This document shows positions 9,340 through 62,164 of a stretch of DNA of 64,000 nucleotides, one piece after another (within the stretch, counting starts at the first letter, position 1; each line of letters opens with the position of its first letter). Both the position numbers and the translations under genes were made by a program. Source of the stretch: Selaginella moellendorffii (Eukaryota > Plantae > Lycopodiophyta). The notes below the pieces were generated by a model. The model was not told the origin of the DNA. It did not search any database and was given only the letters and a program-made list of their open reading frames with translations. The stretch is from assembly GCF_000143415.4 (NCBI RefSeq), contig NW_003314309.1:427459-491458 (forward strand), written 5' to 3'.

Positions 9340-9539
9340 GAAGCAAATGCTTATAACAAACTATAAACTCAGTTTTGCCTGCAAACCAAAGACAAAGTGT
9401 TAAGCATTTTTTTAATGCGAATTTGTGATTGACAATTGGAAGGAAAAAGTTTATAGTGTCTGGCTACAAAGGCAATCTCAACTCCTAGACAATCCAAATA
9501 AAGAATGATAATTGTCTCTCTTTATTTTGAGAGGTATCA

Positions 9540-11007: not shown

Positions 11008-11008
11008 A

Positions 11009-11235: not shown

Positions 11236-11374
11236 CATGATCACTTTCATGATCCCTCTGTTCTAGCTATTTGAACAGTCGAAACGTGGAAATTGGAATC
11301 TCTCCGGCCGGAGGAGTCATTTAAAAGGTTTACTGTTTGAGACTTGGCCGCGCCCAGCTCTCGCAAAGGTAAAT

Positions 11375-12559: not shown

Positions 12560-12724
12560 GTCGTTGCTCGTGCGGTCCGAATGCTCTGGCCCATCTAATA
12601 AGAATTACGTGCTTCCCTTCTCCACCCTTTCAAACTTTAAGAGAACAAAAAATCCGAAGAATCCAGCTGTCCTTCGCTATCTAACTTTCCAAATCCTGCT
12701 TATCTTACACCTGTAAGTGACGTA

Positions 12725-15340
12725 TCAGGACGGTCTGTCTAGAAAGACCGACTCCACCGATCGAAGCCCCTGATAACTGGCGTCAAACACGAGCTCCCCA
12801 GTTCCCACAGGCTTGGTCTGCTTCTTGAACTTGAGAAAAGCCAACGTGCTCGGATCGGTATCGATGGACTCCTCCACCCGCTTCTTATCCTTGAAATCGT
12901 CGTGCTTGTCCAGGTACCCACGCTGCATTTGCTTCCGGATAACAGCAGGCTTCCCAGCTTGAACAGCACTAGAAGGTAAATCCCGGTTGGAAATTGTCCC
13001 GTTAATGTTTGGCGCCAACGCCAAAGGCGCCTCTGGTCTCTCATTTAAATCTATCCTCTCCGAAAACTTCTTCCTCGATTCGTTTAAACTCTGCACGAAA
13101 CGGTGCTGTAAATCAACACAAAAGTACATAGTAGAAAACGCTTACTTGTTTCTGCAAAGCTTTTCTCCTTTCTTTCGCTCTGTAAACAGCATTCTTGATC
13201 CCGTCCTTGTCCATCCAGCCTTCAGGCCATAGATCAGCCAGCTGGAAAAAAATAAAAATAAAAAAAATTCAAGAATATAGTAGGGTGGAGAAATTTGGAC
13301 ACAACAAACCTCCATATAGAGCTTGCGACTTTGAGTACCTCTATTTTCATCAGTTCCCTGCAGAGGAATAACACTTAACACCTTCAAACGTTGCAATAGC
13401 AAGTAAACCTCAAGGTACTGATCATAGAGTTCGCAGATCCGGTCTTCTGTAGCTTGGTCCCATTTGTAGTTCTTTTCACCAACTCCTTGAACGTCGTTGG
13501 AGAATCCTTCTTCAGCCTGACGGTTTTCCAACAATTAATGAACCCATTTAACATTATTATACCTTTGCCTGTATCGATTGTACCCTTGAGCGAACAATTT
13601 CTGTCAAGTCACGCTTCATATGCGACAAACGATGTTCCTTTTCGTGCTTAGCGACTAAGCCCATTTCGACCATCTCCTTCAAATTTCTCTACAGATGTAA
13701 AGAAGAAAAACATCATTCTAGTAAACAACAGGGTGGAGAAAAGTACCTTAAGTGTCTTCAACTGCATCAGATGACCAAGTATGCTCATCAAACGATCGAT
13801 AAGCTCGTCAGGAACTTTTCCTTGCCTCGCCTACAAAAGCACAACGGGACTCAGAATCGGTTCGTAAATATCTTTACTGCATACCGCAAGTCTAGCAACT
13901 TTCGCTATTTTGGCCTTTATTTCCCTTGGCAAACGCCTTACTTTTCCGGTGGCATTTGGCTCTAGAACATCTGGAATCGGACGCACTAGTACAAAGAGCC
14001 ACATTAGAAATCATCACAAAATATATAACTTCCTTACGCTGAGCAACTCCAGCTTTTAGATCTTGAATGGCCCTTTCCAAAAGTGACACTTTCGCTGTCG
14101 AGCGTTTTTGGGGATCAACGCTCGAGTTTCCTAACGTTGAATTCTGCTAAACAAAAGTTAGAACAGCCACTTAGATCTTTCAGACTTACCGCTGACGAAG
14201 AAACTTTGCAGGCATCTGCACCCGAATATGCCTTCACAAACTTTGGCCGGCTCGGACTTCCAACAGCGCTCTTCTTTAGAGCTACCTCATTTCTCTCGTT
14301 TTCCTTGGTGCGGGAGCTGTTCTTCGTCAACCCTTTCAACGACACATTTTTTGATATGTAATTGGCTTCCCTGCAACTACTCCCGTCCCTTGAGAAAAAC
14401 TTGTTGTAGTCGAAGGAAAAAGCATCATTTCCAGCTGCCTGTCGAACCTGCGTTTCCGACTGCTTGTTTACTAGACATTCCCCGATTCCATCCGAAGAAG
14501 GCCTGTCAACGCTTTCTTGCTCTACCCTTCCAACAGCTTTTGATTTCTTTGAAGAATCCTGAGCATGCATTTCAGATCCACTGGTTTTCACCTCCTTGCG
14601 TTTCCTCTTCTTTGGAACAGGTAAACAAGGCGGATTGGGTTCTCTGCAATAACGATGATAAAACTTCAAACGAAAACGCTATGAATCGAATTCAGGTCTT
14701 ACATATTTTCTAGCTTCCCTTTGTTGATAAAGAACCCGCTGTGCTTCGTTTTAGCATAGTCCACAGAGAAGTACTCGTCCTGCATGTTGAGATAAGAACA
14801 TAGAAATCTTTCGAGCAGCAAGTAGTCGTACCAGCTCCTTGTCATCTATGAATGAATCGTCTGTATTATACTGATCATCATCCGGGACGTTGTCAAGGTG
14901 ATTGTCGACAATTTCATCGTCACTTTCTTGTCCTTGTCCCTGTCAAGAGCAAGCTTTTAAGAGATCAAGCTACCAGATAGAAGAATCTATAACCTGATAA
15001 AGGCGTTCTATCTTCTCAATGACGTTACTAAAACGATTTGGACCTCCTCGTGGCTCTTTGCATAGCAGCACCGTCTGATCATCACAGGAGCAGAGAGCTT
15101 CTTTATGGAAGGGAAAGAAAGAAAAAAAATCTCGCTTACCTCTGGTGCCAAGCGAGCTTCCAATGCTGGATTAGCACCGGGAGGAGCCTCAGCGGCAGGA
15201 GGGGGTGGAGCACTCTTGAGGAGCTTCTTCCACGACACCACATTCGAGGTAAGCTCCACATGAAACCTCTGCCTCCCGGATTCCGTCCCGGCAAAGGGCG
15301 ACGCCTGGAAAGCAGTCACGAATCCAGAGCCCTCGGGCAT
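12725..15340 (-). CDS. UBN: Ubinuclein (HPC2/UBN subunit of the HIRA H3.3 chaperone complex), multi-exon
   Basis: RQRFHVEL..VVSWKKLL, PGANPALEARLAP, NRFSNVIEKIERLY, the HPC2/HRD motif DDQYNTDDSFIDD, and UBN-middle motifs YKWDQATEDRICELYD and LWPEGWMDK.GIKNAVYRAKERRK, separated by short GT-AG introns. The last-exon boundary is less certain. Confidence 0.9.
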
Positions 15341-15887
15341 TTTCGATAGGGAAGCGAGAGATCAAAACGCCAGATTCTAGCCCGGCATTCCACTCCTGCT
15401 CTTCACCGATCCCTAAAATCTCTTGAGACCTTGCGACAAAAACCTGGATTATGCCGGTTAGCGGTGCCAGATCTTCCGCGAGCTAGGGTTCCTGAGATGG
15501 CGCACCTGAATTTCACCGAAGAAATGCCACTGGCAGCGCCTACTCAACCGCGCGAGACCAGGAATCAAACACGCGCCTCCATCCGGGAGAGCGCGACGAA
15601 CAAACGTTACCTAATATGTAGCGTCCCACCTCTCTCTCCAGGCATACTTATAAAACCTTCAAAGACCAAGCACTCTCGAGAGCAGCCTGTTTAGGAATCG
15701 AGCTCTGGACCGTTTTGTGGAACGAATCCAGGCCGTTGATGTCTCTCCATCCAGGCCGTCCGTCTACTCTTCTTCTTTGGCGCCCAATGGGCTAGGGTTT
15801 AAGGCGCGACGACGCGAGAAGAGGTAAGGAAATGCGCAAGATTTTTATTGATGAACACCTTGCCGATTCCTTGCAGCGGTCCTCGCC
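15341..15887. promoter_or_regulatory. Bidirectional promoter (UBN / TOP6B) with telo-boxes and site-II-like motifs
   Basis: Divergent ATGs at 15340 and 15888. CTAGGGTT at ~15483 and ~15792. GCCCAATGGGC at ~15782-15792. Confidence 0.5.
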
Positions 15888-18790
15888 ATGGATTCTAAGA
15901 AGGTTAAGGCGACGAAGACGCAGGATCCCGCTCTAAAGCAAAGTCTGTGAGATCCTTCGCTCTTGGGGATGAATGCTGATGGATTTTGACTGCGTTTTTG
16001 TAGAGTCGCCAGCGGAATTTTTCTCCGAGAACAAGAACATCGCGGGTTTTGATAATGTATGTAGACTTTGATTTCTATTTGTTTTTTGATCCAAGTTCTG
16101 CAGCCTGGGAAAAGCTTGTACACGACAGTGCGTGAACTGGTCGAGAATGCTCTAGATTCGGCCGAATCCATTGCGGAGCTTCCAACGATCGAGGTCACAA
16201 TGTGAGTTCTTCCTTTTCTTTCTCTTTATTTTCTCTCTTCTGGTCTCAAATTTTCCAGTGAAGAGATAAGCAAGTCCAAGTTTAACGCTATGATTGGACT
16301 GGTCGACCATGAGCGAGTCGATGCGGAGCTTTATGATGACTACGAAAACGAGAAAGCCCGCGAGGTATATTTCTGCCAAGAAGGTCATTTTAAACTCGCT
16401 TTCATCCTGTAAACTTTCAGAAAAGATTGGCTAAAGAAGCTCGTGAGCAAGAACGCCAAGCGAAGGCCATTGCAGCTGGTAAAAAAGTCACTGTTCCTAA
16501 GGCTGGGAAAGGCCGTGGAGATACAGTTTTTTACAAAGTTTCTTGCAAGGTGAGGTTTTTCGTTTTCTGGAATTCTCACGATGATTGGAGTACCCACTCG
16601 CTTTCAGGACAACGGCAAGGGAATGCCACACGATGACATACCAAACATGCTTGGTCGAGGTATTATTCTGTATATTGGAAGTCATTTTGATGGTTTGTTT
16701 CTCAGTGCTATCTGGCACAAAATACGGGCTCAAACAAACTCGGGGCAAATTTGGACTCGGAGCAAAAATGGTATCCGCAACATCTTTTGTTAAACGATGT
16801 AACCGAGAAGTCTCATGCAGGCACTGATATGGTCGAAAATGAGTACTGGCCTGCCCATCGAGATTTCGAGTGCTATGAAGGGGCAGAAATTCATTTCCTT
16901 TTGTCGTTTAGACATTGACATCCACAAGTAAGATGCTGGAGTTTAAAGAACGTTTAACGAGTTTTCTTTCCTTTGTGCAGGAACATTCCTAATGTTCATG
17001 TACTTGAAAAGAAGCCCAATACTACTGGCTGGCACGGGGCCGAAATTCATGTAACCATTGAAGGGAATTGGACGACTTATCGGGTGAGTTTCTTTTCTTC
17101 TCTTTTCTTTTTTTTTTGTTTTTCTGATGTGCATTTGCAGTCCAAAGTTATAAGCTACATGCGGCAAATGGCTGTCATCACACCGTATGCACAGTTCCTA
17201 TTTCGCTACAGAGCAGGGACTCCAGAGTATGTGTATTCTCGTTGTCCTAGTGCCTTGCTGATCGGTGGATACTCAGAAAGAATGTAAGCGTACAGTTTGT
17301 GAGGAGGACCGATGTTATGCCTCCTGCACCTCCAGAGACCAAGTATCATCCATCTGCTGTGGATTTACTCTTGATCAAGCGACTTATTGCCGAAAAGTCG
17401 AAGCAAACGTTGATCCAGTATTTGCAGCAGGACTTTGTTTCAATCAACAAGTCTTATGCGGAACGTCTCATCGGTAAGCCTAATGCAACTGTTTCAGATC
17501 CTGACCTCTGGTTTTCCAGGTGAAATGGGCCCTGATTTCACTCCAAAAATGCTGGTAAAAGATCTTACCGACCAGCAGCTCGTTCGTATACATCAACTCT
17601 TTAGACAAGCTAAGTTCGACGATCCCGACGGTGATGTGAGTAAAACTTTTCTCTGTCATATAGCTAACCGTGCATCTGTTTAGTGCTTAAGTCCCGCCGG
17701 AGAATACAACCTGCGCCTTGGAATTACAAAAGAGTTGCACCCAGACATGGTCGCCACTTGCCAAGGGAAGTAAGTTAATTTCCTACCTGACTAGAACAGC
17801 GAAATGAGCTTTGGCTTTGACAGTGTTCAGGTCTTTGAAGGACATCCATTCATTGTTGAGGCAGCAGTGAGCTTAGGAGGGAAAAGCGTAAAGCCAGTAA
17901 GTCCGCTGGTAATCTTTGTCTGGGCCTCACGTATCTAAATGAACAGGGCTTGAATATTTTCCGCTTTGCAAACCGAATCCCTCTTCTCTTTGAACAAGGT
18001 GGCGATGTAATTACTAGAACAGCAACGAAACGAATCAGGTTAGCATTTTTCTTTTCCATGATTTATAATCCCGTTCATTGTTTTGCAGCTGGAGCGCATA
18101 CAAGATCAGCCACCTACAGGACAAGGTTGGAGTTTTTGTCAGCATTGTTAGCACAAAGATACCTTTCAAAGGAACTGGTAAAGAGTACATTGGAGATGAT
18201 ATTACTGAAATAGCATCCGGAGTCAAGGTTGATCTGTTACTACGTTCGGCTGTGCTCTGACTCGGCTCTTCATTTCAGTCTGCTATACAACAGTGCTGCA
18301 TACAGTTGAAAGCAAAGCTCGTCCGTCAGAAAGCTGCTCGAGATAAACTTGAACGGAAGAAAAACCTTTCCAGGTATTACAAAGTTTCAATCTGCTTGGC
18401 TATTGAAAGAAAACTTGTAGGTACATCCCTGACGTCTCAAGAGCAATTTACGGGGTTCTCGCAAGCATTGCAAATGAACGGGAAGCGAAGAGGCAAAAAT
18501 ATGAACCTGATAGTCGGGAGATTTTGCATAAAGTCGCGGATAAAGAAGTTACCGAGGTAACTTTGTCACGAAAGCTTACGCAGTATGTTGATCAGGTAAG
18601 TATAGGATTTTCTTTCTTTTCCGCTATTTTCATTATTTTACAGGTGGATGCCGAGTTGGCTCTTGATTATGCTACTCAAAGTGGACTTGTCAAGGCACGA
18701 GAGCCCATTTCCTTGGCAGGAGTAGACTGGAATCAAGCAAATTATCTCGAGCTTCACAGCCCAGTATGCGTCATGAAGTTGCTCTCCTGA
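15888..18790 (+). CDS. TOP6B: DNA topoisomerase VI subunit B (~19 exons)
   Basis: Spliced product: MDSKK...QKSPAEFFSENKNIAGFDNPGKSLYTTVRELVENALDSAE (GHKL N-box), DNGKGM, LSGTKYGLKQTRGKFGLGAKMALIWSKMSTG, YMRQMAVITPYA, FRFANRIPLLFEQG, STKIPFKGTGKEYIGDD, ending CVMKLLS* at 18790. Confidence 0.97.
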
Positions 18791-19513
18791 CCATACATGG
18801 TGAGTTGTACTCCGAGCTCTTCCGATGGCATTATTTCATCAAGAGGTATGCATGTCTTGTCTCATGTTTGAGAAATTTTGCAACTTTGACTAATGATCCG
18901 GACAAAGATATTGGTGCTTGGTACTAAACTTGTTGATCTTAGTCATTGCAAGTGATCCGTCTCAAAAATTATAAAATTAAAACAAAAACATTTTAAAAAA
19001 AATCAAAAAGTGTTTCTTTTTGCTACGACATTTCATGCCTTCATGTTACTATATATTCAGCTATAAGCTAAGGAACAAAAGTATCTAAATTGGGGGCTTA
19101 GTTTGGTCACTACACACTGTTTTTAAATCTTGTTTATTCTCAACTCTAATATTATTGCAAGATCCTAGAAAATGACAAGATCCCCTAAATTAAAGCTCAT
19201 GGTTCTTTGAAGGGTCATGTATTCATTGAAGGCTTTTAAGTGATTTACCTTTCAAAATTTCAGAGTCTGCAGTTACACATGGCTTCATTTTTAATGCTAA
19301 TATTATAACATTTTTTAGAAAAATCCTTGCACTTTTTAGCCTGATTACAGACATTATTACAAAACAAAGATAATTCTTTGCATACCAGTGGCGACAGAAA
19401 CATAATATTCAAACCTTAATCAACCATATAGTTGAAGTTGTGGTTAAATAGCTTAGTTAATATAACATTAATAAAAATTAAGTAACATTATTCTAAATTT
19501 TTTTATTAAATGT

Positions 19514-27500: not shown

Positions 27501-29213
27501 CTGAGAGTGTTGGTGACTCAATTCGAATTGGTGATGGGGTTGATCCTGTACCACAGAAGATATTGGAGTTGTTGGTGCGGAATCAGGATATCTTCCCAAA
27601 GGATTTGCCACTAGGGCTACCTCCTAGCCGTGAGGTTGATCATCGGATTGAGGTTATTCCAGGTTCTAAACCACCTACAAAAGCTCCATATCGGTTGAAC
27701 ATCAAGGAGATGGCTGAACTCAAAAAGCAACTCACGGAGCTTCTTGACAAAGGTTATATCCGACCAAGCAAGTCACCTTATGGAGCGCCGGTCCTTTTTG
27801 TTATGAAAAAGGATGGAACTATGAGGATGTGTATTGACTATCGGGCACTCAACAAGATCACGGTTAATAACAGTTATCCTTTGCCTCGCATTGATGACTT
27901 GTTTGACCAACTCTTAAAGGCTAAGTATTTTACGCGACTTGATTTGCGGTCCAGGTATCATTAGATACAAGTAGCAGATCAGGATGTGGAGAAGACAGCC
28001 TTTAAGACTCGGTACAGATCTTATGAGTTCCTTGTCATGCCATTCGGGTTATGCAATGCTCCAGCAACGTTCAGCATATGATGGATAGAATATTCGGAGG
28101 TTATTTGGACGCATTTGTTGTCCTTTATATCGACGATGTTCTAGTCTTCAGTGAAACGTTGGAGGATCATTTGAAACACTTGGAGCTGGTGTTTCAGAAG
28201 TTGCGCGAACACAAGCTGTATGCTAAGGAAAGTAAATGCGCTTTTGGTCAATTGCGCGTAAACTTTCTCGGACATATAGTTGGTGGTGGCATGATTAAGG
28301 TCGATCCAAAGAAGGTGGAAGCGGTGAAGTCCTGGGAAGTCCCGACCACTGTATCAGATGTTCGATCCTTTCTCGGTTTGGCAGGATACTATCGCAAGTT
28401 TGTCCACAATTTTCCAAGAATTGCTCTTTCGTTGACTGAGTTGACGAAGAGTAGTATTCCGTTTCATTGGACACCAGCTTGCCAGCGTGCTTTTGTACGA
28501 TTGAAGGAGATCTTGATTACGGTTCCTGTTCTTAGGATTCTAGATCTTGATAAACCCTTCGAAGTGCATTGTGATGCGTCTGGCTATGCTATTGGTGCCG
28601 TGTTGCAGCAAAATTGTGACAAAGCGGTCGGTGTTACGCTAAGGCGATATGGTTGTCCCGTTGCGTTCTATTCCAAGAAATTGAATGAAACCCAACGAAG
28701 ATGGCTAACGCATGAGAAAGAGATGTTAGCTATAGTGTCAGCCCTGGAACACTGGAAACACTACTTGGGTGGACACACCAAGGTTTATATAGATAGTAAC
28801 ACACTAAGCTACTTTGCTACGCAGCCTAAGATTACGCCAAAGCAGGCTCGTTGGCAAGAGAAGCTTGCTAGATATGATATTGAAATCATATATAAACTTG
28901 GTAAAGATAATATTGTTTCGGATGCGTTGAATCGTTAGGCTCAATTCCGGGAAATATCGGCAATCAGTTCGGACTGGTTAATGTGAGACACAAAATCCCT
29001 AGGCCCCAAAGTGGAGCCGGAAAGGGTGCCACGTGGTAGTGGCTGAAGCGAGAGCCAAACGAGCGTAACACGTTTGGACCAAAAGCTCCGACTGGAAAAG
29101 TCAAGAGCGGGAGTGGAACTCCCAACGAAGTGCTCGAGGAATGAGCACGAAGCGAGCAAAAAGCGAGGCTCCAAAAAGGGACCCAAAAGGACCAACACAT
29201 GACACGTGGAAGT

Positions 29214-29965
29214 GTCCAAGATGGACTCGAGCTGGAGTCCAAAGTGGAGTCCGAGATGGACTCGAGTTGGAGTCCGAGATGGACCCGAGTTGGAGTCCGA
29301 AGTGGAGTCCGAGATGGACCCGAGATGGAGTCCGAGATGGAGTCCGAGGTGGACCCGAGATGGACCCGAAATGGAGTCCAAGATGGAGTCCGAGATGGAG
29401 TCCGAGGTGGACCCGAGATGGACCCGAAATGGAGTCCGAGATGGAGTCCGAGATGGACCCGAGATGGACCCGAAATGGAGTCCGAGATGGAGTCCGAGAC
29501 GGACCCGAGATGGAGTCCGAGATGGACCCGAAATGGAGTCCGAGATGGACCCGAGATGGAGTCCGAGATGGACCCGAGATGGAGTCCGAGATGGACCCAA
29601 GATGGAGTCCGAGATGGAGTCCGAGATGGACCCGAGATGGAGTCCGAGATGGACCCGAGATGGAGTCCGAGATGGACCAAGACGGAGTCCGAGATGGACC
29701 CGAGATGGAGTCCGAGATGGACTCGAGATGGAGTCCGAGATGGACCGAGACGGAGTCCGAGATGGAGTCCGAGAAGGACCCAAGATGGAGTCCGAGGTCG
29801 AGACCGAGACCGGGACCGAGACCGAGACCGAGACCGAGACCGGGACCGAGACCGAGACAAGGGCCAAGGCCGAGACCGAGCCCGAGTCCAAGTCCGAGTC
29901 CGAGTCCGAGTTCGAGTCCGAGTCCGAGTCCGAGTCCGAGTCCGAGTCTGAGTTCGAGTCTGAGA
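29214..29965 (+). repeat. Hexamer-based tandem array inside the 5' LTR of C
   Basis: Mixed GAGATG/GAGTCC/GACCC 11-12-mer units, then (GAGACC)n, then (GAGTCC)n. Confidence 0.95.
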
Positions 29966-32900
29966 GGGTGAAAGCCCAAAGCGTTCGTCTCCCAGACCCT
30001 GGGGGGTTTGGTGAGCTCCAAAAGTATAGTAGGGGGAGGACTACAGTGGAGCCAGTTTGGCCAGGAAAGGCCAGTTTGGCCCAGGAAGGCCGGACTTAGT
30101 GTTGGGTGATGAGCTGCCCACTGGGAAGTCCAAGACTAGAGTGAACACAGACCGACAAGCGGGGTAGCTTGGTGAAGTGTTCAAGAGCCGGCTCTAGTTC
30201 CCCCGGGAGATCGACTGGCCGATGCTCCCAGTCCAAGTGTGGGTGGCACTACCTACTTGGATACCTGGTGTGGCTCAACGGAACCCGCTCTAAGCCCATG
30301 GCTAGAGCACCCAAGGGCAGAAGGCGAGGAGAGTACCTAGGTGGCTCACGTAAGGCCACGGTGTTCCGAAATGTTGTCCCAAAGGCCTAGACTGTGGAAA
30401 GGAAGAGGAGCAGTCCTCTGGGGTAGTGACCAAGGACACAGTCGTGTGGTGAGGAAGTCCCAGAGGACCGTGGGACTTAGTGGTCGGGCCTGTGGGTCTC
30501 GATCCAGTGGCAGTGTTGGCAAACACGGCCAGGGGCAGGAAGGGACTTAGTGGGGACTGACAGAGGGATATTGGGGAAGGCTATTCCCCTTGTCGGTGGG
30601 CATCCTAAGGATGCTAAGGAGTGGATCTGAGATGACCACTCACGGATGGTTTGCCTAGTCTTGGAGAGCCAAGACGGTGATGCAAGTGGTATTGGACTAC
30701 CAGTGTGGCAAAGGTGATTGGGCATGGCCTTAGCGTAACGGGCTACTATGTCAGTGGTACCTTTGAGTGTCGGTCATGGGATCGGACACGTGGAGCACTT
30801 GGACCAAGTGCAAATGTTGAGTGGCATGGATGCCATTCTCGGGGCTAGCAAGCCCCAAGTCTTGAGTTGAACTTATGGAGGTTGTGAATGAGACTCCTCC
30901 AAGTGGTCGGAGGTGTGGTTAAGTGACTAAAGTAAAATGGAAAATTTAGTCGCTTACAATTTGGTATCAGAGCTGTTCCTTAGTCCGACTTTTATTGGTG
31001 CTCAAGTATATCACCACTGGTGTTGGCAACGGAAGGTCCGAGAAGTGGGCCTATCCTTGAGGAGTAGCAGGTCGGGAAGACATGGCTCTCCATTACAGTT
31101 CATGTGTGAACTTGTAGATAAGGTGGTGGATAGAAAAGGGGCCAATAATGGAACGACTTTGGGATCTTGGGAACAATGCAAGGTTTTCCTCATTGAGTTG
31201 AGGAGGTGATCCAGATGAGCGTTTGACTCAGCAAACGGGCTAATGTAGTTGGGGTAAACAACTATAGTTGGGATCACGGGGAAGATAGAGACTCCAAAAA
31301 CAATAAAGGAGTCACAAGTTTATCCTCACATAGTTGAGGCTGGTGCTCATGAAGGTGAGACCGGAGTGGATGACCGTGAGAGGTCAAGTATGGATGAGGA
31401 CACGAGTCCTCGAAATGGTAGCTGGGGCTACCTCTAATAAATGCTGGAACAACCCAAGGAGTTGGGAGTGTATTAAGTGGATGAGTTGGTATTCTCATCA
31501 CATGGACAAGTAGTCCTAAGGGGCAAAGGTTGCCCCCAGAGAACAAAATCAAGTGTCAGAGTAACACTTGTGAAAATAGTCCTTTTGAGTAGGATAGGAA
31601 TGCAAGAAGTGTATTCCAGTGAGATAGTGCCTCACAAGTAGGACCTTATGGGTCTGTGGATTAACCAAGTCCAAAACTGCTTGATGACTCAAGTAGAGTC
31701 AAGGGATGGTCCTAAAAAGGACTGATGGAAGCATTTGGACTAAGGTGTGTTGTACCCCACAAAAGATGGGGGGGGATCATAGGATCCAAGGATGAGAACA
31801 GAGGGTATCTCATCGATGGCAAAATGTGCCATGCTAAAGTCGTGGGAAAGGTGTTCCCAAAAAGAAAACACCTTTGACACAAAGTTGTGTGTGACCTCTA
31901 TGATGCAGTGCTAACAGATGGTTGGCATGAGAAAGAGTGGTATTGGTCTTGGCAAAGACTTAGACACAAAGAAGAAGTGTCATAGAGGTAGGCTCGTGAA
32001 GCCGATGGTGTGGAGACACCAAATGTGCCAAAGTGTGATACCTTGAGGCTATGTTGGTGGGTTCATGAGAACCCCTTGCCAAAGGAATCCCAATAGAAAT
32101 GGGAATGGCATAGCCTAAGCTGCAGAGCATGCAGTTGGAGTGTGGTGACCCAGATAATGATGGAGGTGTGGAAGCACCAGCAATGAGTTGTAGGACTTGA
32201 CAACTACGAGGCAACTAAGCAAAAGGTGCAAAATAATTGGTTAAACGGGTAGAAGGTAGCTACCCAAACCTTCTTAATGGCATAAGGAAGTTGGATATAC
32301 CCTTACGGGGGATAAGTTGCTTATGTTGTGATATAGTAAGTCAATGTCATAAAAGGAAATACTTATTGTCAAGGAAGCCGTCATTGGGACACCCGAACAC
32401 TCCAGAACACCAGGAGGTGGTGTTTGATGTCGCGAGGGCAGTAGATAAGGCCCAAGGGACTAAGTCCCTAGCGAATGATGGATAGTAGGTGCTATCCAAA
32501 TATCCAAGGTGGCAGAGACAGGAAAAGACTGTCTACTCGAATTGGACAAAGCCAAAAATGGAATTTTGGCAAGGTTAGCAATGGGCATGCAAAGGCCCGT
32601 AAGCAACAACGTAATCCCGGTGTGTGGGATTATAGGGTGAGCATACCTGGATTGAGGAACCACTCCCTAGGCTATTGGGTATGTTCATCCCTAAGAATAC
32701 TTGCTAAGGCATGATAGAAAGTGCAAAGCTATCCTCCTAGTCTGGAGGAGAATGACCGAAGGAAAGGTGTGAAGCCAAAAGCAAGAAGTAAGGGGATAGA
32801 ACCGAACTATAGGAATCGAAGGGCAAAACCAAGGTTGGTTATGCCAGCTGGGAGTGGAGAATCAAGTGGGGGCTCGAGGGTGTTGCCACTAGCAACCGTG

Positions 32901-35303
32901 ATGCCATGGAGAGTCTAAAATATGGAATTGTCCATGTTAGACTATATGGTAATTGGAAAGCTTGCAAAAAGGGAGGCCTTAGCAAGCTAAGGGACAGAGT
33001 GCCTTCAAGGTTCCCAAAGAGGATTCTAGGTAGCTTAGTACCTAGAAAGGCCAAGCGTAAATGGTTCAAGGAACGCGCGAAATCAGAGTGGCGCAGCAGA
33101 AGCGTGGTCTTGAAGCTTGCCATGAAGCAAGGCTATTAAGGTTAGGGAAGTAGTTCCCAAGTGTTCAAAGAGAAGGCTTTGAATGAAAGTCGATGATCAA
33201 GGGCTTTCACGCTTGTGCAAGAACCATGTTACAGTGGTCGAAGGATTTGCCAAAGCGAGATTGGCAAGTTAGGGGAACAAATACCCTAGTTGAAGGTGAT
33301 AACTTCAAAAAGGGTGGGCCATGGGGCCAAGCATGGAGGAGTCCATGCATGATCACAGGCCTGTCAAGTGAGAGGACTTGGCAGTGGGGAAGAACTAGGT
33401 TCCTAAGTTGTGATTTATAGTGTGCTTTGAGTATAAGTTGGTGCACCGGCATGGGGAGTCACGCCAGGCATCCTGGGTGATGCCGTTCGTAGATGCATAT
33501 ACGGAGGTTGGGTTCGAGTCCCGACCCTCTAGTGCTTGGGTTCGAGTCCCAAATCACTAGGGCGTGGTGATGGTTTGGAATATGAGGACACTCATATTTC
33601 GGTGGTCATGGACTCTCAGTGGGGAGACTGGTTTGGGCACACCGCCAAGCGAGGGATGCCTCGGAGTCGTGATGCACGGTTAGATTGCTTAGTGTGAAAG
33701 CTCGGCATATCTAACTTGAACGCTTTGGTGCAAGTGGCACCAAGGACGTGGTGAGTGAGATGGGGACACCTAATCTCAGTTGCTATGGACCCTTGGCCGG
33801 AAGGGCTGGCTTGGGCGCACCGCCAAGTGTGGGGGATGCCTCTGGGGTCGTAGTTAACAAGTTAAAGGTCTGGAAGACCTAGTACCTATTGGCAAACCTG
33901 TTAAGGTGCCGAGGTGAGATCACTAGGTGATCTTGTGGCTAAATAAGGACAAGGTCCTTGTTTGGGTTAAGGAATAAGGTTTTTAGTTCAAAGTGTTGAT
34001 TTGAACTATTGATGATGGTGTGGCTTGGTCAAGGTGACCAAGTGGGAAAAGCACCTTAGGGAAATGAGCTATGTCATTGCGATGGCATAGTGTGTCCAAG
34101 GAAAGTAGTCCCTAAAGAGACCCATGAGAGGGTCACAAAGTTGGGCCGAGGATAGAGCCCACAGCAGAAGATGCTAAAAGAGACTTACTAGGGGTGAACA
34201 CCCTAGTCTTGGCAAAGTAGAGCCTTTGCTATGGAATCAAAAGCACACCTCAAGGAGGGAGGTAGAGATTCGATGTTGCTTGGTGCAACAATCAATGGAT
34301 AGGAGCAAAAGATGAGTGGCCAAGATAGGGCCGTGGAATTCCTTAGAAGGAATCCAAGTGACAAAGTTAGGCGAGGAACACTAATGTGTTGGACGCTAAC
34401 AAATTGCGGGAAAGGAAGTGTGTTTCCAAGGATGGATTCCGAATTGCTCCGATTTGGCGAAAGTGGAAGCTCCAAGGGAGGGAGCGGTAAGGTAGCCAAA
34501 TGATAGGGCGATGGACAACCCTAGCACAAAGTGTGATATATGGAACTTAGTGCCCAAGGTGGCACGAAATAGAAGAGAGGATGATGGTGCCCTCAAGTAA
34601 TGAACTTCCTAGGATAGGGAAGTGGAGTTGCACAATCTGTGCAATGCAAGGTGTTGGAGACACTTAGGAAATTGACTTCCAAAAGTCAAAAGAGTAAAAG
34701 TTCCAAGGTGCAAACATTCAATAGATGGAAATTGAGACTACTCGAGAAGGAGTAGTGGGATTGACTTAGAGAAGGGTCTCTAAGAGGTTTAGCGAGAACT
34801 AAACCAATAAAAGGAGAGAACCACTACATGTGGTCCAATCAGTCTCTAAGTTGGAGAGACTACCCTCCTTAGAGGATAGGCAAGGCATGGTGAGCCTTTG
34901 GTGTCAAACCATTGAGGCATATGCAAAAGGCATGGTGAGCCTTCAATGTCAAACCATTGACAAATATTGGCTAGGTGCCAAGGATGGAAATAGTAACACA
35001 TGCGAGTGTTACTTTACAAAATGGTTTACCGTTCGATGAGGACATCGAACTTCGTCTATGGGTGGTAGAGTTGTGAGACACAAAATCCCTAGGCCCCAAA
35101 GTGGAGCCGGAAAGGGTGCCACGTGGTAGTGGCTGAAGCGAGAGCCAAACGAGCGTAACACGTTTGGACCAAAAGCTCCGACTGGAAAAGTCAAGAGTGG
35201 GAGTGGAACTCCCAACGAAGTGCTCGAGGAACGAGCACGAAGCAAGCAAAAAGCGAGGCTCCAAAAAGGGACCCAAAAGGACCAACACATGACACGTGGA
35301 AGT

Positions 35304-35812
35304 GTCCGAGATGGACTCGAGTTGGAGTCCGAAGTGGAGTCTGAGATGGACTCGAGTTGGAGTCCGAAGTGGAGTCCGAGATGGACCCGAGTTGGAGTCT
35401 GAAGTGGAGTTCGAGATGGACCCGAGATGGAGTTCGAGATGGAGTCCAAGGTGGACCCGAGATGGACCCGAAATGGAGTCTGAGATGGAGTCCGAGACGG
35501 ACCCGAGATGGAGTCTGAGATGGACCCGAAATGGAGTCCGAGATGGACCCGAGATGGAGTCCGAGATGGACCCGAGATGGAGTCCAAGATGGAGTCCGAG
35601 ATGGAGTCCGAGATGGAGTCCAAGATGGACCCGAGATGGAGTCCGAGATGGACCCGAGATGGAGTCCGAGATGGACCGAGACGGAGTCTGAGATGGACTC
35701 GAGATGGAGTCTGAGATGGACTCGAGATGGAGTCCGAGATGGACCGAGACGGAGTCCGAGATGGAGTCCGAGAAGGACCCAAGATGGAGTCCGAGGTCGA
35801 GACCAAGACCGG

Positions 35813-35865
<53 letters not shown>

Positions 35866-35970
35866 GGACCGAGACCGAGACAAGGGCCAAGGCCGAGACC
35901 AAGCCCGAGTCCGAGTCCGAGTCCGAGTCCGAGTCCCAGTCCCAGTCCCAGTCCGAGTTCGAGTTTGAGA
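35304..35970 (+). repeat. Hexamer-based tandem array inside the 3' LTR of C
   Basis: Same unit structure as 29214-29965 but shorter. Confidence 0.95.
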
Positions 35971-38256
35971 GGGTGAAAGCCCAAAGCGTTCGTCTCCCAA
36001 ACCCTGGGGGGTTTGGTGAGCTCCAAAAGTATAGTAGGGGGAGGACTGTAGTGGAGCCAGTTTGGCCAGGAAAGGCCAGTTTGGCCCAGGAAGGCCGGAC
36101 CCAGTGTTGGGTGATGAGCTGCCCACTGGGAAGTCCAAGACTAGAGTGAACACAGACCGACAAGCGGGGTAGCTTGGTGAAGTGTTCAAGAGCCGGCTCT
36201 AGTTCCCCCGGGAGATCGACTCCAAGTGTGTTTGGCACTACCTACTTGGATACCTGGTGTGGCTCAACGGAACCCGCTCTAAGCCCATGGCTAGAGCACC
36301 CAAGGGCAGAAGGCGAGGAGAGTACCCAGGTGGCTCGCGTAAGGCCACGGTGTTCCGAAATGTTGTCCCAAAGGCCTAGACTGTGGAAAGGAAGAGGAGC
36401 AGTCCTCTGGGGTAGTGACCAAGGACACAGTCGTGTGGTGAGGAAGTCCCAGAGGACCGTGGGACTTAGTGGTCGGGCCTGTGGGTCTCGATCCAGTGGC
36501 AGTGTTGGCAAACACGGCCAGGGGCAGGAAGGGACTTAGTGGGGACTGACAGAGGGATATTGGGGAAGGCTATTCCCCTTGTCGGTGGGCATCCTAAGGA
36601 TGCTAAGGAGTGGATCTGAGATGACCACTCACGGATGGTTTGCCTAGTCTTGGAGAGCCAAGACGGTGATGCAAGTGGTATTGGACTACCAGTGTGGCAA
36701 AGGTGATTGGGCATGGCCTTAGCGTAACGGGCTGCTATGTCGATGGTACCTTTGAGTGTCGGTCATGGGATCGGACACGTGGAGCACTTGGACCAAGTGC
36801 AAATGTTGAGTGGCATGGATGCCATTCTTGGGGCTAGCAAGCCCCAAGTCTTGAGTTGGACTTATGGAGGTTGTGAATGAGACTCCTCCAAATGGTCGGA
36901 GGTGTGGTTAAGTGACTAAAGTAAAATGGAAAATTTAGTCGCTTACAGTTAAAAGATGTTTGGGCTTCATATGGAAGTGATCCATTGGCGAAGGCAATCT
37001 TATGCTGTGTAGGGTTGTTGAAGCAGAGCCCTGGTAGCGACGCAGCAAAAGTTGCTAGTCGCACTAATGTGAAGCTTCACTTCTCAGTTCGGGATGGGCT
37101 TATATTCTATAAGCAAGAAAGATTGTATCTTCCCTCTAAGGATCTTCAGCAATTATTTTTGCGAGAACATCATGATGTTCCGGCAGCGGGACATGGTGGG
37201 AAGCAAAAGACTCTAGCTTCATTGAAAAAGGGATTTTTTTGGTCTGGTATGGAAGGTGATGTAGCGGATTATGTCTGTTCCTGCCCTATATGCCAGCAAT
37301 GTAAGTGCAGAACTGAGAAGCAAGCTGGAAAGTTGCAGTGCATTCCAGCACCGGCATGGCCATTTCAAAGTGTGACACTTGATTTCATCACTTGCTTGCC
37401 GAAGTTTAAGGGTTATAATACTTTGATGGTGGTTGTTGATCGGTTGTTGAAGATTGCACACTTCATTCCAACTGTGGGAACAGTGAATGTGAAACAAGTA
37501 GCAAAGCTCTTTTTGCATGAAGTAGTGCGAGTTCGTGGTCTTCCTGAAGAGATGATCTTGGATAGAGATTTGGGGTTTATGGGGAAGTTTTGGGGCACAC
37601 TATTCCAGCTGTTCGGTACCAAGTTGAAGTTTAGTATGGCTTATCATCCTCAGACTGATGGGCAGACCGAACGCGTGAATACTCAAGTTGAGGATTATCT
37701 GCGGTACTATGTTGCGGCGGACCAACGCGACTAGGTTGAGCATTTGGATACAGCAGAAATATGTTATAACAACACATTTCACAGCGCTATAGGCTGTTCT
37801 CTATGGGAGCTGCTGCAAGGGAGTGCTCGTGGGGTTCCTCAACAAATTGTTGTACCGAAACCAATGTCCGAAGTGTTAGTCCCAGCCGTTGAAACTTATG
37901 CAGAGCAGCTACGCCAAGGTTGGTCTAGAGCTACTAAGGCGATGGGCAAAGCTCAGGATAGGTATTGACGTGATAAGGATCAGCATCATCGGGATGTATC
38001 CTATCAAGTGGGAGATCAGGTGTGGCTATCTTCCCGGAACTTGAACATTAAGGGATCTTTGTCTCGGAAGTTATTACCGAGATATGTTGGACTTTATCGG
38101 GTGTTGAAACACATTGGTGATGTATCCTATCGATTGGATCTTCCTGCGGAGATATCCCATGTTCATAATGTATTTCATGCCAATCTTTGGGCTCCTTACA
38201 CTATCGATGTTGCGCAATGAGGGAAGATTCGTCCGCCACCAGATGTTGTGGACGGT

Positions 38257-54696: not shown

Positions 54697-57600
54697 AGTG
54701 AATGACTTAATATTAGTTTATTTTCCCAATCTTATGGTACATGGTTTGTTTAAAAAACTCTTTGCTCAATGAAAAAGACCATATCAGGTGTTACAACAAG
54801 TTGAGCCACAAGTTTATGAAGTTTAACATAACATTTAATAGGCCAGTCCTCCAAAAATTGTTGTGCAATGACTGAAGCACTTCATACAAAGAGATAAAAA
54901 ATAATTGGCACCACTTATAGATCCACTAGTGCCTCCTTATTCCTCTAAATTTTGACCTATCAACTAAAGAACACTAATTGCCTTCCATCCTTATGAGAGG
55001 AGGAAATGATTTAATGTTCAATTGTATTACAATGTTATATATTAATAATAGTGTGAGGGCCAAGTGTACGCCTATGTAGCCGTATACTAATATTAGCGTA
55101 GTGGGATTTTGGTAGCTGTCGGATTGGTTTCAATCCCGACCACTCACTCCTGTATATAAGCTAGGGTTTTTGGGCTAATTAATATGCACATTTTCTTGTA
55201 TTCTCTTTCCATATTCCAAGCACTCACATTGGTGGAGATGAGGGGCACCTTTGATTGTCCCTGAGGAGTGCTTATATTTGGGATTTTGGTTTAGATTTAG
55301 CTTTTGCATCGTCTAGATCTAGCTTTTTCCATTTCCTTTCTTTTTCTTCCCTTTCAGGATTTTGGTTTAGATCTAGCTTTTTGCATTGTCTAGATCTCCC
55401 ATTTCCTTCTCGTTTTTTGTCGTTTCTTTTCTTTTGCTCTTTCTTCGTCCATCTTCATGGCAGATCAGCAATCTCCTCCTTTGACTCTAGAGCAGCAGTT
55501 GGTCCAATTGCTTGATGCTATGCACTTGCAATTGAACAACCAAACTCAATTGATGGTGGCATTCACGGCACGTGGTCCAACTCCTCCTGCTCTTGGTGCC
55601 AATCCTCGCGTTCAGCTGGAGTTCTTTCGTGGGAATCTTGGGGATGATGTGTACCATTGGTTTGATCACTTCACGGTGATTGCCACATATCATTCTTGGG
55701 ATGATGCTTGACGTTTGCGTGAGTTTCCCACGTGTCTCCAAGGGATGAGTGGTACAATGGATTGAGTGCGGCCACTCGTGGGGATTGGAGTCTTCTTCCG
55801 GACGTCTTCAAATGCGCCTTCGGACATGCCGACGATTGTGACGATGCCTTTCAACAATTGCATCGTCTTCGCCAAGGGCCATCTGAGTCAGTGATGCAAT
55901 TTAGCATTCGTTTTCAAAGTCTTTTGCTTCATGCGGAGCCCAATATGTCAGAGCGGATCAAGCTAGGAATGTTGTGGCCAGCACTTCGTCAAAATCTTGT
56001 CGGCCTTGTGCATGCACTTGCTCCTGCTACCCTTGACGATGCTCTTCCCTTGGCACAACGTTATGAAACATCGCCTCTTCCACTTCTCGCTGCACGTCCT
56101 TCTGCTCCACTTCCTATGAGTGATGGTCCTGTTCCAATGGAGGTTGATGTTGCTGCTACTCGAGTCCAAGGACAAGGGCGAGGACGTGGTCGTGGCCGTG
56201 ATGTTCGTTGCTGGGCGTGTGATGAAGTTGGTCATACTTATCGGCGTTGTCGGCGCTTTCCGGATTGGCGACCTCCATTTCCTAGGTGGAGACCTTGGCC
56301 TCAACAACATCCTGTTGGTGTTGCTACGGTGGAAGGTTTGGACACCGAGGTGCATCTGGGAAATGAGGAGTCGCGCGAGTAATGGAGGGACCTTGCGCAA
56401 ATAAGTTAGTGACCCCTCCATCTTTCTTTCGAGAGTATCATCAAGGGTTCACTCGACACCATTTCATCCAGTGTTTACTTTCCAAGCTCGTTTTTATAAC
56501 AAGAGGTCTCCTATTATTCTCTCCGTGTTGGTTGATACAGGTTCGAGTTTATCTTCTATTGCTCGACCTGTTGCCACACGTTGTCGTTTACACTTGCGTC
56601 GTGTGGTGGATCCAGTTTTCATTCTTTATGGCAACGGCCATACACATGCATGTGCACGCGATGAGGCAAACCTGGTTGTGCGTGTGGGCGATTTTGAGCT
56701 TGAATTGCAATCGTTGCGGGTGGTGCCGAGTCAAGCTTTTGACCTCATTCTTGGTATGGATTGGTTGCAGCACAATCATGCCAAGTGTGACTTTGAAGCT
56801 TCTCCCCCTTGTCTCATACTTCCTTATGTTTCATCTATTCCTCTCACTTCCGTACCTCTTCGTCCCTCTACTTCTACCTCTGCTTCCATTACTTTTGTTC
56901 CCCCACTATTTCCTCCTATGTTTCCATCTTGTTCTGCTCTTCCCTTTTCCGATCCCTCCGATGATCTTTGTGTTGCAGCTGTTGATCGGCTCATGAAGGA
57001 GTATTCTAATCTCTTTGATTTTGACCTATCGTCTGGGGCCAAGATTGCCACACGTCATCCGATTCCAACCGGGGATGCTCGTCCAATCAAGGTTCCTGTT
57101 CATCGTCGGTCACCCAAGGAGATCAAGATTTTACGTGCAAACGTCAAGGAGATGTTGGAGAAGGGTGTTATTCGGAAGTCGCGGAGTCCTTGGGCATGTG
57201 AACCTCATCTTGTGACGAAGCCTGATGGGAGTATTTGTTTCTGCATCGACTATCGTCCGTTAAATGAAGTGACGATCCCAGATGTGTACCCTCTTCCTCA
57301 CACTACTGATCTCTTGGATCGTCTAGGGCGAAGTTGTTGGTTCACCAAGCTAGATCTTGCTTCTGGGTACTGGCAAGTACCGATGGCCACAGAAGATATT
57401 CCTAAGACTACTTTTCGTACACCGTTTGGTTTGTACGAGTTCTTGGTGATGCTATTTGGCTTGAACAACGCTCCAGCAACTTTCCAGCGGATGATGGACG
57501 AGGTTCTTTGTGATATGCCAGAGGTGACTGCCAACTTCATTGATGATGTCTTGATTCACTCGGAGGGGACGTGAGAGGAGCACGTTCGTGATGTTTGTAA

Positions 57601-60186
57601 AGTGTTGGATCGGCTATGCAACGTTGGTTTAAAGCTGAAGCGGTCGAAGTGCATATTCGGGTGCAAGGATACAACTTATCTTGGGTACCGTATTTCTTGT
57701 GAGGGTTTGCAAGTTGATCCTGACAAACTTGTGGCTATTCTAAAGTTCCCTACTCCGAAATGTGTGAATGATGTGCAGCGCTTCTTGGGCAAGGTGCAAT
57801 ATCTCGGTCGTTTTTTGGATCATCTTTCTGATCACACTGCACCATTGCGAGCGTTGTTGAAGTCATCAATATCATCTTTCATCTGGTCTCTGGATTGTGA
57901 GCGGGCGTTCGTGGATCTCAAAGAGCTATTGACGACTCCTTTGGTTTTGGCATATCCTGACTACACTCGACCTTTTATTTTGCGCGTGGATGCTTCTCAC
58001 ATTGGTCTTGGAGGTGTGTTGATGCAAGAGAGCTCGAGTGTGCCTGGTCAGCGCCATCCTATTGCGTATATAAGCCGTACATTACAACTAGCGGAGATGA
58101 ACTACTCCACGACGGAGAAGGAGTGTTTAGCAACAGTTTGGGGTTTCGAGAAACTTCATGCATATCTACATGGTTCTCGGACGTTACTTGAAGGTGACCA
58201 TGCTGCTGTTACTTCATTATTGAAGCGGAAGAACCTAGTTGGTCGTACTGCTCGGTGGGTTTTGAAGCTTCAGATATATGATTTTGATGTTGTTCATCGC
58301 CCAGGGAGTTCTATGGCTGATGCTAATGCCCTTTCTCGAGCTCCTCTTCCTTCTTCATTCACTTCTCATGTTTCTGACGAGCTTATTGTTCCAGCATCTG
58401 TGGATTTTCTAGACGAAGATTCTGTGCTGTCGGCGGTTGCTGTCCTTGACGTTCAGTGTCCACAAGGCGCAGAGCAGGATTTACCTTCTCTTGATGATGT
58501 TCGCGAGGCTTAAAAGATTGAGCCGTGGATTCAAAGGCTTCGAGATGGGTTTGAGAATCCTACATCACTTGCTGATGACTTGCCTTTCCGGCATTTACAT
58601 TCTCAATATCGCCTTGAAGATGGCTTTCTTTATTTTGTGGCGACGTATCCTGAGGATCATTTACAGCTGGTGGTGCCTTCTATCTTTATTCCGCGGTTTC
58701 TCCATGCCTACCATGATTCTCCTGTTCTAGGTGGGCATATGGGACACCGTCATGTAACCAAGAAGCTGCGCAGATCTTTTTACTGGCTGGAGATGCGACG
58801 TGATGTTATCCGGTATATGCGTAGCTGCGTTTGGTGCCAAGCTCATAATACTCCCCCTCGTGCTGCAGAAGGACGGTAGGAGTCAATTGCGGTTTCCCGT
58901 CCGTTTGAGTTGGTGGCGTTTGATCTTATGGGACCTTTTCCACGGTCAACTGCTGGCAATGAGTATGTTATTATTGCTTCTGACTACTTGACTCGTTGGG
59001 TGGAAGTTAGTGCTCTTGCTAGCGCCTCTGCAACTTCTGTTGAATACTTCCTCCTCAATCGAGTGGTGTTCCAGCATTCTTGTCAAGAGCGGATTCTTTC
59101 AGATAATGGTCCCGCATTTATGGCTGAGGTATTTCATGTTTTGACGTCTCGGTTGGGGATACGCCACACTTTCACGAGTGCTTATCATCCACAATCAGAC
59201 GGTCTGGTGAAACGGCTCGTTTGAACATTCAAAGGGATGATTGCGAAGTATGTGAACTTTCAGCATTCGGATTGGGATGGTTATTTGCCATCTCTTCGGT
59301 ATGCATATGTCACAGGGGTGCAAAGTTCTGTTGGTGCTTCACCATATAAACTCTTATATGGTCATGATCCAATATTACCAATGGAGTTGGGTTTACTTTC
59401 GCGATTGCCACGAGCTGCCGATGCTAGGTCATGGGATCAGTATTTAACGAGCATTCTTCCACTTGTCCAAGCAGAGTCTGCCAAACACTTAGGCCGCGTA
59501 CAAGTAGGACAACAACGGTGCTACAACTCTCATCATCGTCCACCTGCGGAGTACAAAGTGGATGATTTGGTATTAGTCCGTTTTCCTCATCTTACGGTAC
59601 GTGGTTTATCTAAGGGACTTTTTGCGCAGTGGAAAGGACCGTATCGGGTGTTGCGGCAAGTTGGACCATAAGTTTATGAGGTTTAGCATGACGTTCAGCA
59701 GGCTGATCCTCCAAAGATTGTGCATGTGCAGCGGCTAAAACGCTTCGTACAAAGGGATCAGGAGGAGTTAATACCACCCACAAATCCACCGATGCCTCCT
59801 CTTGATATTCCTCCAGATCCCAGCCCATCTACAAAAGAACCCTGATGGTGTTCCATTATTCCGAGAGGAGGGGATGATATGAGGGCCAAGTGTACGGCTA
59901 TGTAGCCGTATACTAATATTAGCGTAGTGGGATTTTGGTAGCTGTCGGATTGATTTCAATCTAGACCACTTGCTCTTGTATATAAGCTAGGGTTTTTGGG
60001 CTAATTGATATGCACATTTTCTGTATTCTCTTTCCATATTCCAAGCACTCACAATAGTATTGTAGGATTTTAATAATTATAAGATGTATTTCAATTCAAA
60101 CCATTCGCTTCTATATATAAGCTAAGGTTTTGGGGCTAATTGAACATGCATATTTTTTATTTCATTTCTATATTCCATGCACTCAT
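54697..60186 (+). mobile_element. Old 3' remnant of family A (integrase tail plus 3' LTR), split by insertion of copy 2
   Basis: 54697-55010 aligns with the integrase C-terminus and PPT (GAGAGGAGGAAATGA). Its decayed LTR is at ~55010-55051 and resumes at 60058-60186 (TATATATAAGCTAAGGTTTTGGGGCTAATT...CCATGCACTCA). Confidence 0.8.
55052..60053 (+). mobile_element. Full-length Ty3/Gypsy non-chromovirus, family A copy 2
   Basis: LTRs at 55052-55228 and 59878-60053. 4-bp TSD ATAG. PBS TGGTGGAGATGAGGGG (complementary to a tRNA-Ala 3' end). Gag at 55457-56382; pol to 59845 with multiple stops. Confidence 0.95.
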
Positions 60187-60468
60187 GACAGTAATTAAAT
60201 TAATTTTATTTTTTTAATTATTTACAAATTATAATAGAATATATATCTTAGAATATATTTTAAAAAGCAAAAATTACAACTATATGGATAGATACAATCT
60301 AAGTTATTCAGTTTATTATTCATCAAAATATTTTTTAATATTTAGTTTGGAACTATATAGATAAATAAATTAAATTAAATTAAATTTCTTATTTAAAAGA
60401 AATTTAAGAAAATTTAATTATATATTTTATTATATACTATTTTTTATTTTTACATATTATATTAATTC

Positions 60469-61252
60469 ATGTCTAATAAACTTTTCTTACTTATGTTTTT
60501 CTTTATAATTTTCTTAACAAATTATATTGTGAATGGATTTCCAAGAGTATTGATATCTATTACAAGCTACATGGGGGAAGATATTCATTTAATTTGTAAA
60601 TCAAGAAATGATATAATCTATGATGGAATTTTTACTGATGGATATAATTTTCAAAAATATATTTTTCCAACTCCTACAACAGAGTATTGGTGTGATGGAC
60701 AATGGGATAGAAGATTAATACGTTTTCAAGTTTTTAAATTTAATTTATTAAGTTTGAAAGATCAAAAGTGGTACATATTTCATGATGGTGCATATAATTT
60801 TGAGATAGATGATTACTCAGCTAATTGGGCTGGTGCTAATCCTCCTCGTATATGTGGCAGGTATTTTAATTTAAATTTTGTATCTTGTTTTTAATTATAA
60901 TTTTTTTATGTTGTATAGTTTCCATCTTTCATGTACTTCCATTTCTATTGTATCGAGCTTCTTTTTGCAGGCATCATGTACAAATGAAAATAATAGAATT
61001 ATTACTTCTAGACTTAATCTTAATTTTTATATTGGGCAATTTAATGGGCATTTAAAGAAAGGCATTAATGGACTTGTGAGCTGTTATGAAGCTACGATTG
61101 GTATATCTCAATTAGGTGTTATTATCCAAGCTCATTGTATTACTGGAGGAGGATTTACAAATTACCGCTATTCAATTTTTTACGTAGAGAATTATATTGA
61201 AAATAAGAATTACATTGGTGTACATAATATTGCTTTGAGTATCATATTATAA
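60469..61252 (+). CDS. Secreted S-protein-homologue (SPH / self-incompatibility S1-like) + cyanovirin-N (CVNH) fusion protein, 2 exons, 241 aa
   Basis: Exon 1 (60469-60860): signal peptide and SPH motifs IHLICKSRND, TTEYWCDGQW, FQVF, WYIFHDGAY. A 58-nt phase-2 GT-AG intron spans 60861-60918. Exon 2 (60919-61252) reads (CG)SFHLSCTSISIVSSFFLQASCTNENNRIITSRLNLNFYIGQFNGHL...SCYEATI...IIQAHC...YIENKN, i.e. two CVNH-type repeats. Confidence 0.75.
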
Positions 61253-62164
61253 ATATATATTGAATTTTATTTTAATCATGTACATATAAAAATAATTTTT
61301 TTCCAGTAGTATATTAGTTTGAATAATAAATCATGTTTACATTAAATAATAATTAACTTATGAGTATATTTGTAGTAAGTACATTAATAATAATAATATA
61401 GCATAGAAACCTTTCAATCAACTGGATTAAGTCTAGTCAACCCAATCTTATGTATAAGCATGCTTAAGACTGGTGGCATATACTGAAAATGATATTTATT
61501 ATGTAAAATATCTTATTTAATATATTCTAGATTCTTTTTACTTAATAAATTATAAGAACATTAAATGATAGTTTTGTAACTTCATAGTGAACCTCATTTC
61601 TCTCTCTCCTCACACTAAGAGGACCACTATAGCTTTGCTCACCATGATAGGCTATTTATTGGGCCTTTTGATGATCAGGTATTGCTATTCACCTATTTTG
61701 CTTAAATAGATAGCCAATTGTAACCCTTGGTTTTAATAGAGATATCTCTACCTAGAATTGATTGAAGGCCACAGTTATATGGAACACTGGTTTTTATACC
61801 TATACAATGTTAATGTGTGTCTCACTTATGGAGGAGCATGTGAATCTTGTTAGATTCATAGTTGGGAGGTAGATCTCATATTTCACAGCATTTACTGTTC
61901 TGTTCATTTTGATAGCAATTTGATAGCCTAGGGTATCCACCCTGTAGTTGTCAAGGAGAACTTTGGTATTTGCCTCTAGATCTAGACTAAAGGTGAGTTG
62001 TCCAACTCTTAATTGTTGGAGGATATGATCCTTATATGACATGAGGCATACCATATAGGTCCCATATCACCCTAGAGCCATGTTTGCTCAAGCATGATAT
62101 GTATCATTCTTCATTCACATATAATGCAATCACAAATTATATTATGGTATTAGAGATGTTGAAG

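Follow-up and report, generated by a model that had tools for sequence, protein, structure and literature searches.

The SPH family has members in mosses and tracheophytes (PMC10619864); poppy PrsS is the only SPH protein for which a function has been identified (bioRxiv 10.64898/2026.02.10.705222). A domain similar to PF05938 is also borne by hevein-GH18(-LysM) proteins of nematodes, of which 16 sequences are described (PMC5297725). The CVNH family is expanded to 27 genes in Selaginella moellendorffii (PMC6362431), and the plant lectin survey that includes Selaginella reports cyanovirin as single or double domains only (PMC6362431 Table S3). The key side chains of cyanovirin-N (CV-N) for sugar binding are N42 and T57 in site B, where E41 is a probable further contact, and the corresponding N93 and T7 in site A; the N42A substitution abolishes binding, and the contacts to the sugar are mostly made by the backbone (PMC8091458). 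The antiviral activity of CV-N requires two sites (PMC4926178).

The S. moellendorffii locus described here combines an SPH-like and a CVNH coding segment. It occupies positions 487,927-488,710 of scaffold GL377613.1 (GCA_000143415.2), whose coordinates are those of the window, the 64-kb stretch of DNA analysed, plus 427,458 (100% match); window coordinates are used below. The earlier note had proposed that two open frames, ORF1 (60469-60894, 141 aa) and ORF2 (60878-61252), join in frame through a 58-nt GT-AG intron, and at the level of sequence this proposal holds. Computed joining of the exons by excision of 60861-60918 leaves a frame of 241 codons devoid of internal stops (Table 1). The borders of the predicted intron read CAG/GTATTT...TTGTATAG/TTTC. 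Seven in-frame GT/GC-AG pairs are less than 150 nt apart, and by inspection the donor and acceptor of this one stand in the most favourable context, the other six having a weaker context or cutting a domain. The alternative acceptors at 60957 and 60996 were rejected for their weak context and the resulting interruption of the CVNH domain. An intron of 63 nt in the ZIP gene of the same window is of comparable size class, in keeping with the claim that neighbouring genes have introns of this length. None of 2000 dinucleotide shuffles of 60200-61450 produced two runs of 124 or more codons without a stop. The open frame is AT-rich, as had been stated, with a GC content of 28-29% in the exons versus 7-18% in the upstream flank; GC1 and GC2 of the exons are about 0.33 and GC3 is only about 0.2. 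A contig from a public run corresponds to 60801-60992 with neither differences nor gap and retains the intron; the public runs, all of low coverage, look genomic and repeat-dominated, and none is registered as RNA. We consider it somewhat probable, jointly with the reading of the product as a secreted protein that recognizes a target, that the locus is one spliced gene with a predicted product of 241 amino acids.

Table 1. Features of the SPH-CVNH locus (window coordinates).
Feature	Position	Strand	Content or basis
Exon 1	60469..60860	+	392 nt = 130 codons + 2 nt: signal peptide, SPH-like domain, linker, initial CVNH residues
Probable signal peptide, residues 1-23	60469..60537	+	Hydropathy; cleavage site judged by eye
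SPH-like (Self-incomp_S1) stretch, residues 37-114, with Cys43 and Cys75	60577..60810	+	PF05938, ESM Atlas
Ala/Gly/Pro linker, residues 115-128, holding the SPH/CVNH seam	60811..60852	+	Gap between Pfam match end and inferred CVNH start
Initial CVNH residues C129, G130 and two bases of S131	60853..60860	+	Equal CV-N residues 1-3, by structural alignment
Predicted intron	60861..60918	+	58 nt, GT-AG, phase 2, 12% GC, T-rich acceptor tract
Exon 2	60919..61252	+	334 nt including stop: two-repeat CVNH domain, short C-terminal tail

The stop codon of ORF1 (60892-60894) falls within the predicted intron, which also contains an ATG (60908-60910) in frame with ORF2. The locus could thus be read as encoding not one protein but a stand-alone secreted SPH, translated from the 141-aa ORF1 of an unspliced transcript, the CVNH frame being separate or a remnant. 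ORF1 indeed supplies a complete signal peptide and SPH segment of the usual SPH size, closed at 60894, the ATG at 60908 precedes exon 2 in frame, and the genomic-looking public runs yielded no spliced read. However, the intron splits the N-terminal motif of the CVNH domain exactly, the excised 58 nt combine their low GC with well-formed splice sites, the sequence leaves no space for a promoter, and retention of both disulfide pairs is not expected of a CVNH that stays in the cytosol. We hold this two-product arrangement to be improbable. Four cysteines stand at the CVNH disulfide positions in exon 2 although it lacks a signal peptide, which we count in favour of the fusion. The ATG at 60908-60910 could start a CVNH polypeptide lacking a signal sequence if the transcript is left unspliced.

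The amino terminus encoded by exon 1 has a hydrophobic core at residues 5-15 (Kyte-Doolittle 3.3). The segment that follows matches PF05938 with an E-value of 2-4e-4 and 21.3-22.2 bits, under the gathering cutoff of 24; residues 37-114 align to profile positions 12-94 of 104, which is 80% of the profile, and PF05938 is the sole family among 24,736 Pfam models to match exon 1. ESM Atlas concurs: SPH clusters come top at 0.93/0.91 with 207 shared features, and SPH is the assignment of 10/10 best matches that have a family, with a recognition value for exon 1 of 2239, slightly under the guide value of 2300. The positions of Cys43 and Cys75 are those that we take to be expected for the first SPH disulfide, and the order of motifs in exon 1, Cys-x-Ser, T-x-Y-W-Cys and W-x-I-x-x-D-G-x-Y, presumably fits SPH. 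No pairwise sequence match to the solved SPH structures was obtained from exon 1. Its single-sequence model is all-beta but of poor confidence (pLDDT 38.7), and the fold search with this poor model returned only generic beta-sandwiches, with Z up to 6.5, and did not recover SPH15. A Pfam match to XFP (E 0.03) was dismissed as noise, and matches of exon 1 to nanobody and amidase entries of the PDB (E 0.5 or worse) were rejected. Exon 1 might then encode a different small secreted beta-sandwich rather than an SPH domain, a reading to which the sub-cutoff bit score, the Atlas value below its guide and the failure to recover SPH15 by either sequence or fold would all lend themselves. It is very improbable in view of an E-value of 2e-4 over the whole Pfam collection with such profile coverage and no competing family, and of a motif order in agreement with SPH. 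From its sequence exon 1 is very probably an SPH domain, and the SPH-like half announced previously can be retained as probable.

Exon 2 gives a firmer assignment. Its PF08881 match reaches 36.6 bits (E 8e-9), above the cutoff of 24.5, and its top PDB sequence match is the fern lectin CrCVNH (2jzj, E 1.4e-7), with identities to solved CVNHs of 20-28%. The AlphaFold model of exon 2, built on a 13-row CVNH alignment that biases the fold toward CVNH, has a pLDDT of 80.8 that falls to 58-70 in the C-terminal 20 residues. With this CVNH-alignment-based model, 23/23 Foldseek matches with E of at most 0.001 belong to the CVNH family (best E 1e-6), and superposition on 5k79 gives a Z of 15.8 and an rmsd of 1.5 over 101 residues. 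Cys136/151 and Cys186/204 occupy the positions of the C8-C22 and C58-C73 pairs. Profile match, best PDB hit and model thus agree that exon 2 is a CVNH domain, as the earlier note had recognized. Its two repeats are unequally preserved: repeat 1 is well conserved (38 bits), whereas repeat 2 is divergent (14 bits) and yields no Pfam match on its own. The joined protein has seven cysteines, and C129 at the start of the CVNH domain has no evident partner. This odd cysteine (60853-60855), with no partner toward the C-terminus, could form an inter-chain disulfide.

The place of the intron bears on how the two halves came together. By structural alignment, residue 1 of exon 2 corresponds to residue 4 of CV-N; the intron splits codon 3 of the CVNH domain, some three codons from its start, and residue 114 is the last one covered by the SPH match. 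Since exon 2 starts at CV-N residue 4, the two domains meet within exon 1 and the intron cuts into the lectin. Exon shuffling had been invoked on the premise that the intron marks the domain boundary; with the seam 5' of the intron, fusion by intron recombination is unsupported and we abandon that part of the proposal. A better fit would be an ancestral two-exon gene for a secreted CVNH whose first exon acquired SPH coding sequence after the signal peptide and ahead of the lectin. The intron would then be inherited from the ancestral CVNH gene rather than represent the fusion point.

The residues that contact the sugar in CV-N are conserved to different extents in the two sites. At site A, T7 is replaced by a serine (S135) and N93 is kept as N226, a residue invariant in the 13-row CVNH alignment; next to the site A contacts, D95 is replaced by N228 and G96, in the hairpin, by Y229. 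At site B, N42 is replaced by Q171, E41 by G170 and T57 by S185, and the alignments show that the aromatic residues W49 and F54 are not retained. CVNHs with a single binding site exist, so the changes at site B do not exclude the domain from the family. Judged by these substitutions, the CVNH half is a degenerate lectin in which at most one sugar site is probably functional, with monovalent binding at best. Because the antiviral activity of CV-N needs two sites, cyanovirin-like potency is not to be assumed here. The designation of the protein as glycan-targeted was overstated: site B has lost N42, which is essential in CV-N.

These changes could be taken further, to a fusion that is expressed but whose CVNH domain no longer binds mannose and serves as a stable scaffold, as a protein-binding domain or as a binder of another glycan. 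In favour of such a loss are the weak score of repeat 2 and its lack of a Pfam match alone, the change of N42 to Q at a position where alanine abolishes CV-N binding, the tyrosine at the site A hairpin and the less confident C-terminal 20 residues of the model. Site A nevertheless keeps N93 and has only the T7 to S exchange, and the contacts of CV-N are mainly of the backbone and hence tolerant of substitution. We judge complete loss of mannose binding unlikely.

The gene is housed in an AT-rich island (about 60190-61600) between LTR elements. A gypsy element with LTRs of about 175 nt that are 95% alike extends over 55054-60053, so that its 3' LTR ends 415 bp upstream of the gene; a degenerate LTR fragment (60062-60185, 80%) ends 284 bp before the start codon, and LTR-like repeat sequence restarts near 62510. 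The description of the gene as lying inside a TE block is correct in that LTR elements flank it, but it sits between elements and is the cargo of none. Capture inside an LTR element was rejected for the same reason, the 3' LTR ending at 60053. The degenerate LTR fragment or the gypsy element could affect the promoter of the gene; a possible disturbance of the promoter by the element ending 415 bp upstream is counted against the explanation that we prefer. A sister copy of the gypsy element, 92% identical, is present at 19.5-24.5 kb.

Scaffold GL377578.1, compared to about 42.4 kb of the window, is apparently the other haplotype and is 97.5% identical over 10995-19421. Window positions 19504-40029 face only positions 18012-18359 of the compared piece of GL377578.1, an apparent haplotype without the LTR elements at about 19.5-24.5 and 24.7-40 kb. 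From these alignments the TE block looks hemizygous for the most part, and both haplotypes seem to be present in the assembly. Short tandem repeats at 28941-30099 and 34971-36238, in a second retroelement family, give rise to long repetitive ORFs on both strands. The gene block at 3711-19421 comprises a ZIP transporter and an AAA-ATPase gene (by ORF sequence), a PRISE reductase, a HUN-domain gene and a topoisomerase VIB-like gene. The PRISE gene (11375-12559) is a single exon and corresponds to an annotated S. moellendorffii protein; it is duplicated, with part of its neighbourhood, on GL377573.1.

Homologues were searched for separately with each exon or ORF. The word-index search with exon 1, ORF1 and exon 2, in which ORF1 reached candidates of 246 aa, gave no close relative. 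The full HMMER search with exon 2 found no close relative either, only distant multi-repeat CVNHs and an Ig-repeat protein that was set aside as spurious. No close relative of either exon was found in metagenome and viral contigs. The protein searches turned up neither a protein that contains one of the exons nor, among 1.8 billion representatives, a relative of about 50% identity or more. Exact look-ups of ORF1, ORF2 and the variant starting at ATG 60908 found no match in protein collections, and the 64-kb window has no second copy of the gene. The gene seems to be missing from public annotation, and by sequence it seems distant from the annotated CVNHs of S. moellendorffii; the prediction that annotation would easily miss it agrees with the absence of both ORFs from public protein sets.

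This isolation, with no relative at 50% identity or above among the 1.8 billion representatives, could also mark a recent chimera that is not under selection and has simply not yet acquired a stop codon. The low GC3, the degenerate lectin and the TE-rich, partly hemizygous region would suit such an origin. Against it, the frames, the cysteines and the motif residues are kept despite divergence from all known members, a retention that selection predicts and drift in DNA of 72% AT does not. We regard an unselected chimera as quite improbable.

We favour, with modest confidence, a hypothesis in which the gene encodes a secreted protein of two domains. Its lectin, weak and confined to one site, would anchor an SPH ligand on surfaces that carry mannose, with defence as the probable function. 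The product would enter the secretory pathway and form the disulfides C43-C75 in the SPH domain and C136-C151 and C186-C204 in the CVNH domain, leaving C129 free and possibly dimerising. The CVNH domain would bind alpha-1,2-mannose termini weakly, probably through site A only, site B being likely dead or changed. The lectin may thereby tether the SPH beta-sandwich to microbial walls or to mannosylated glycoproteins of the plant itself, where the SPH domain would act as a ligand, as PrsS does, or as a surface-binding module. On this analysis the role is most likely defence or microbe recognition. A more speculative extension, which we consider rather unlikely, is that the gene represents a hidden, fast-evolving spikemoss family of secreted SPH-CVNH chimeras in which a PrsS-type ligand is directed by the mannose-binding lectin to the surfaces of microbes or gametes. 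If true, it would open a first route to the function of SPH proteins beyond self-incompatibility in poppy and suggest CVNH as a recurrent targeting module in lycophyte immunity.

The searchable literature on both families, InterPro architectures and the key SPH15 and CVNH structure papers aside, contains no description of an SPH-CVNH pairing, in agreement with the statement of the earlier note that the architecture is undescribed. The combination thus appears to be undescribed, both families and their modular use being already known. Should the lectin half prove to bind a glycan that can be defined, the protein would show where an SPH domain is sent in a seedless plant that has no pistil. The locus also suggests that S. 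moellendorffii annotation misses AT-rich genes for secreted proteins, and that counts of lectins and SPHs are therefore low. The impact is limited by the fact that this is one combination in one genome, with a nematode precedent for SPH in lectin-domain proteins.

With the CVNH lectins (CrCVNH/CtCVNH, cyanovirin-N and the 27 CVNHs of S. moellendorffii) the product shares the two-repeat fold, the four cysteines, secretion, which is predicted here, and the site A contacts. It differs from plant CVNHs by its N-terminal SPH-like domain and by the degeneracy of repeat 2 and site B. With the SPH family (PrsS, Arabidopsis SPH15 and moss SPHs) it has in common a signal peptide, again predicted, a domain of about 90 residues that is modelled as all-beta, and the first cysteine pair. 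Unlike that family, its score is below the cutoff and its domain has two cysteines versus four in PrsS, the second pair being absent; unlike the small single-domain SPHs, it would reach 241 amino acids with a C-terminal CVNH if spliced as predicted. The nematode hevein-GH18(-LysM) proteins also have an SPH-like module in a lectin-domain protein, but their lectin is a chitin-binding hevein or LysM, they carry a chitinase-family domain and they belong to an animal lineage, so that the SPH-lectin associations of nematodes and spikemoss presumably arose independently. The fungal CVNH-LysM protein MoCVNH (2l9y) likewise uses CVNH as a module beside a second binding domain; its LysM is lodged between the CVNH repeats, whereas the spikemoss CVNH has its partner, an SPH-like domain, on the N-terminal side.
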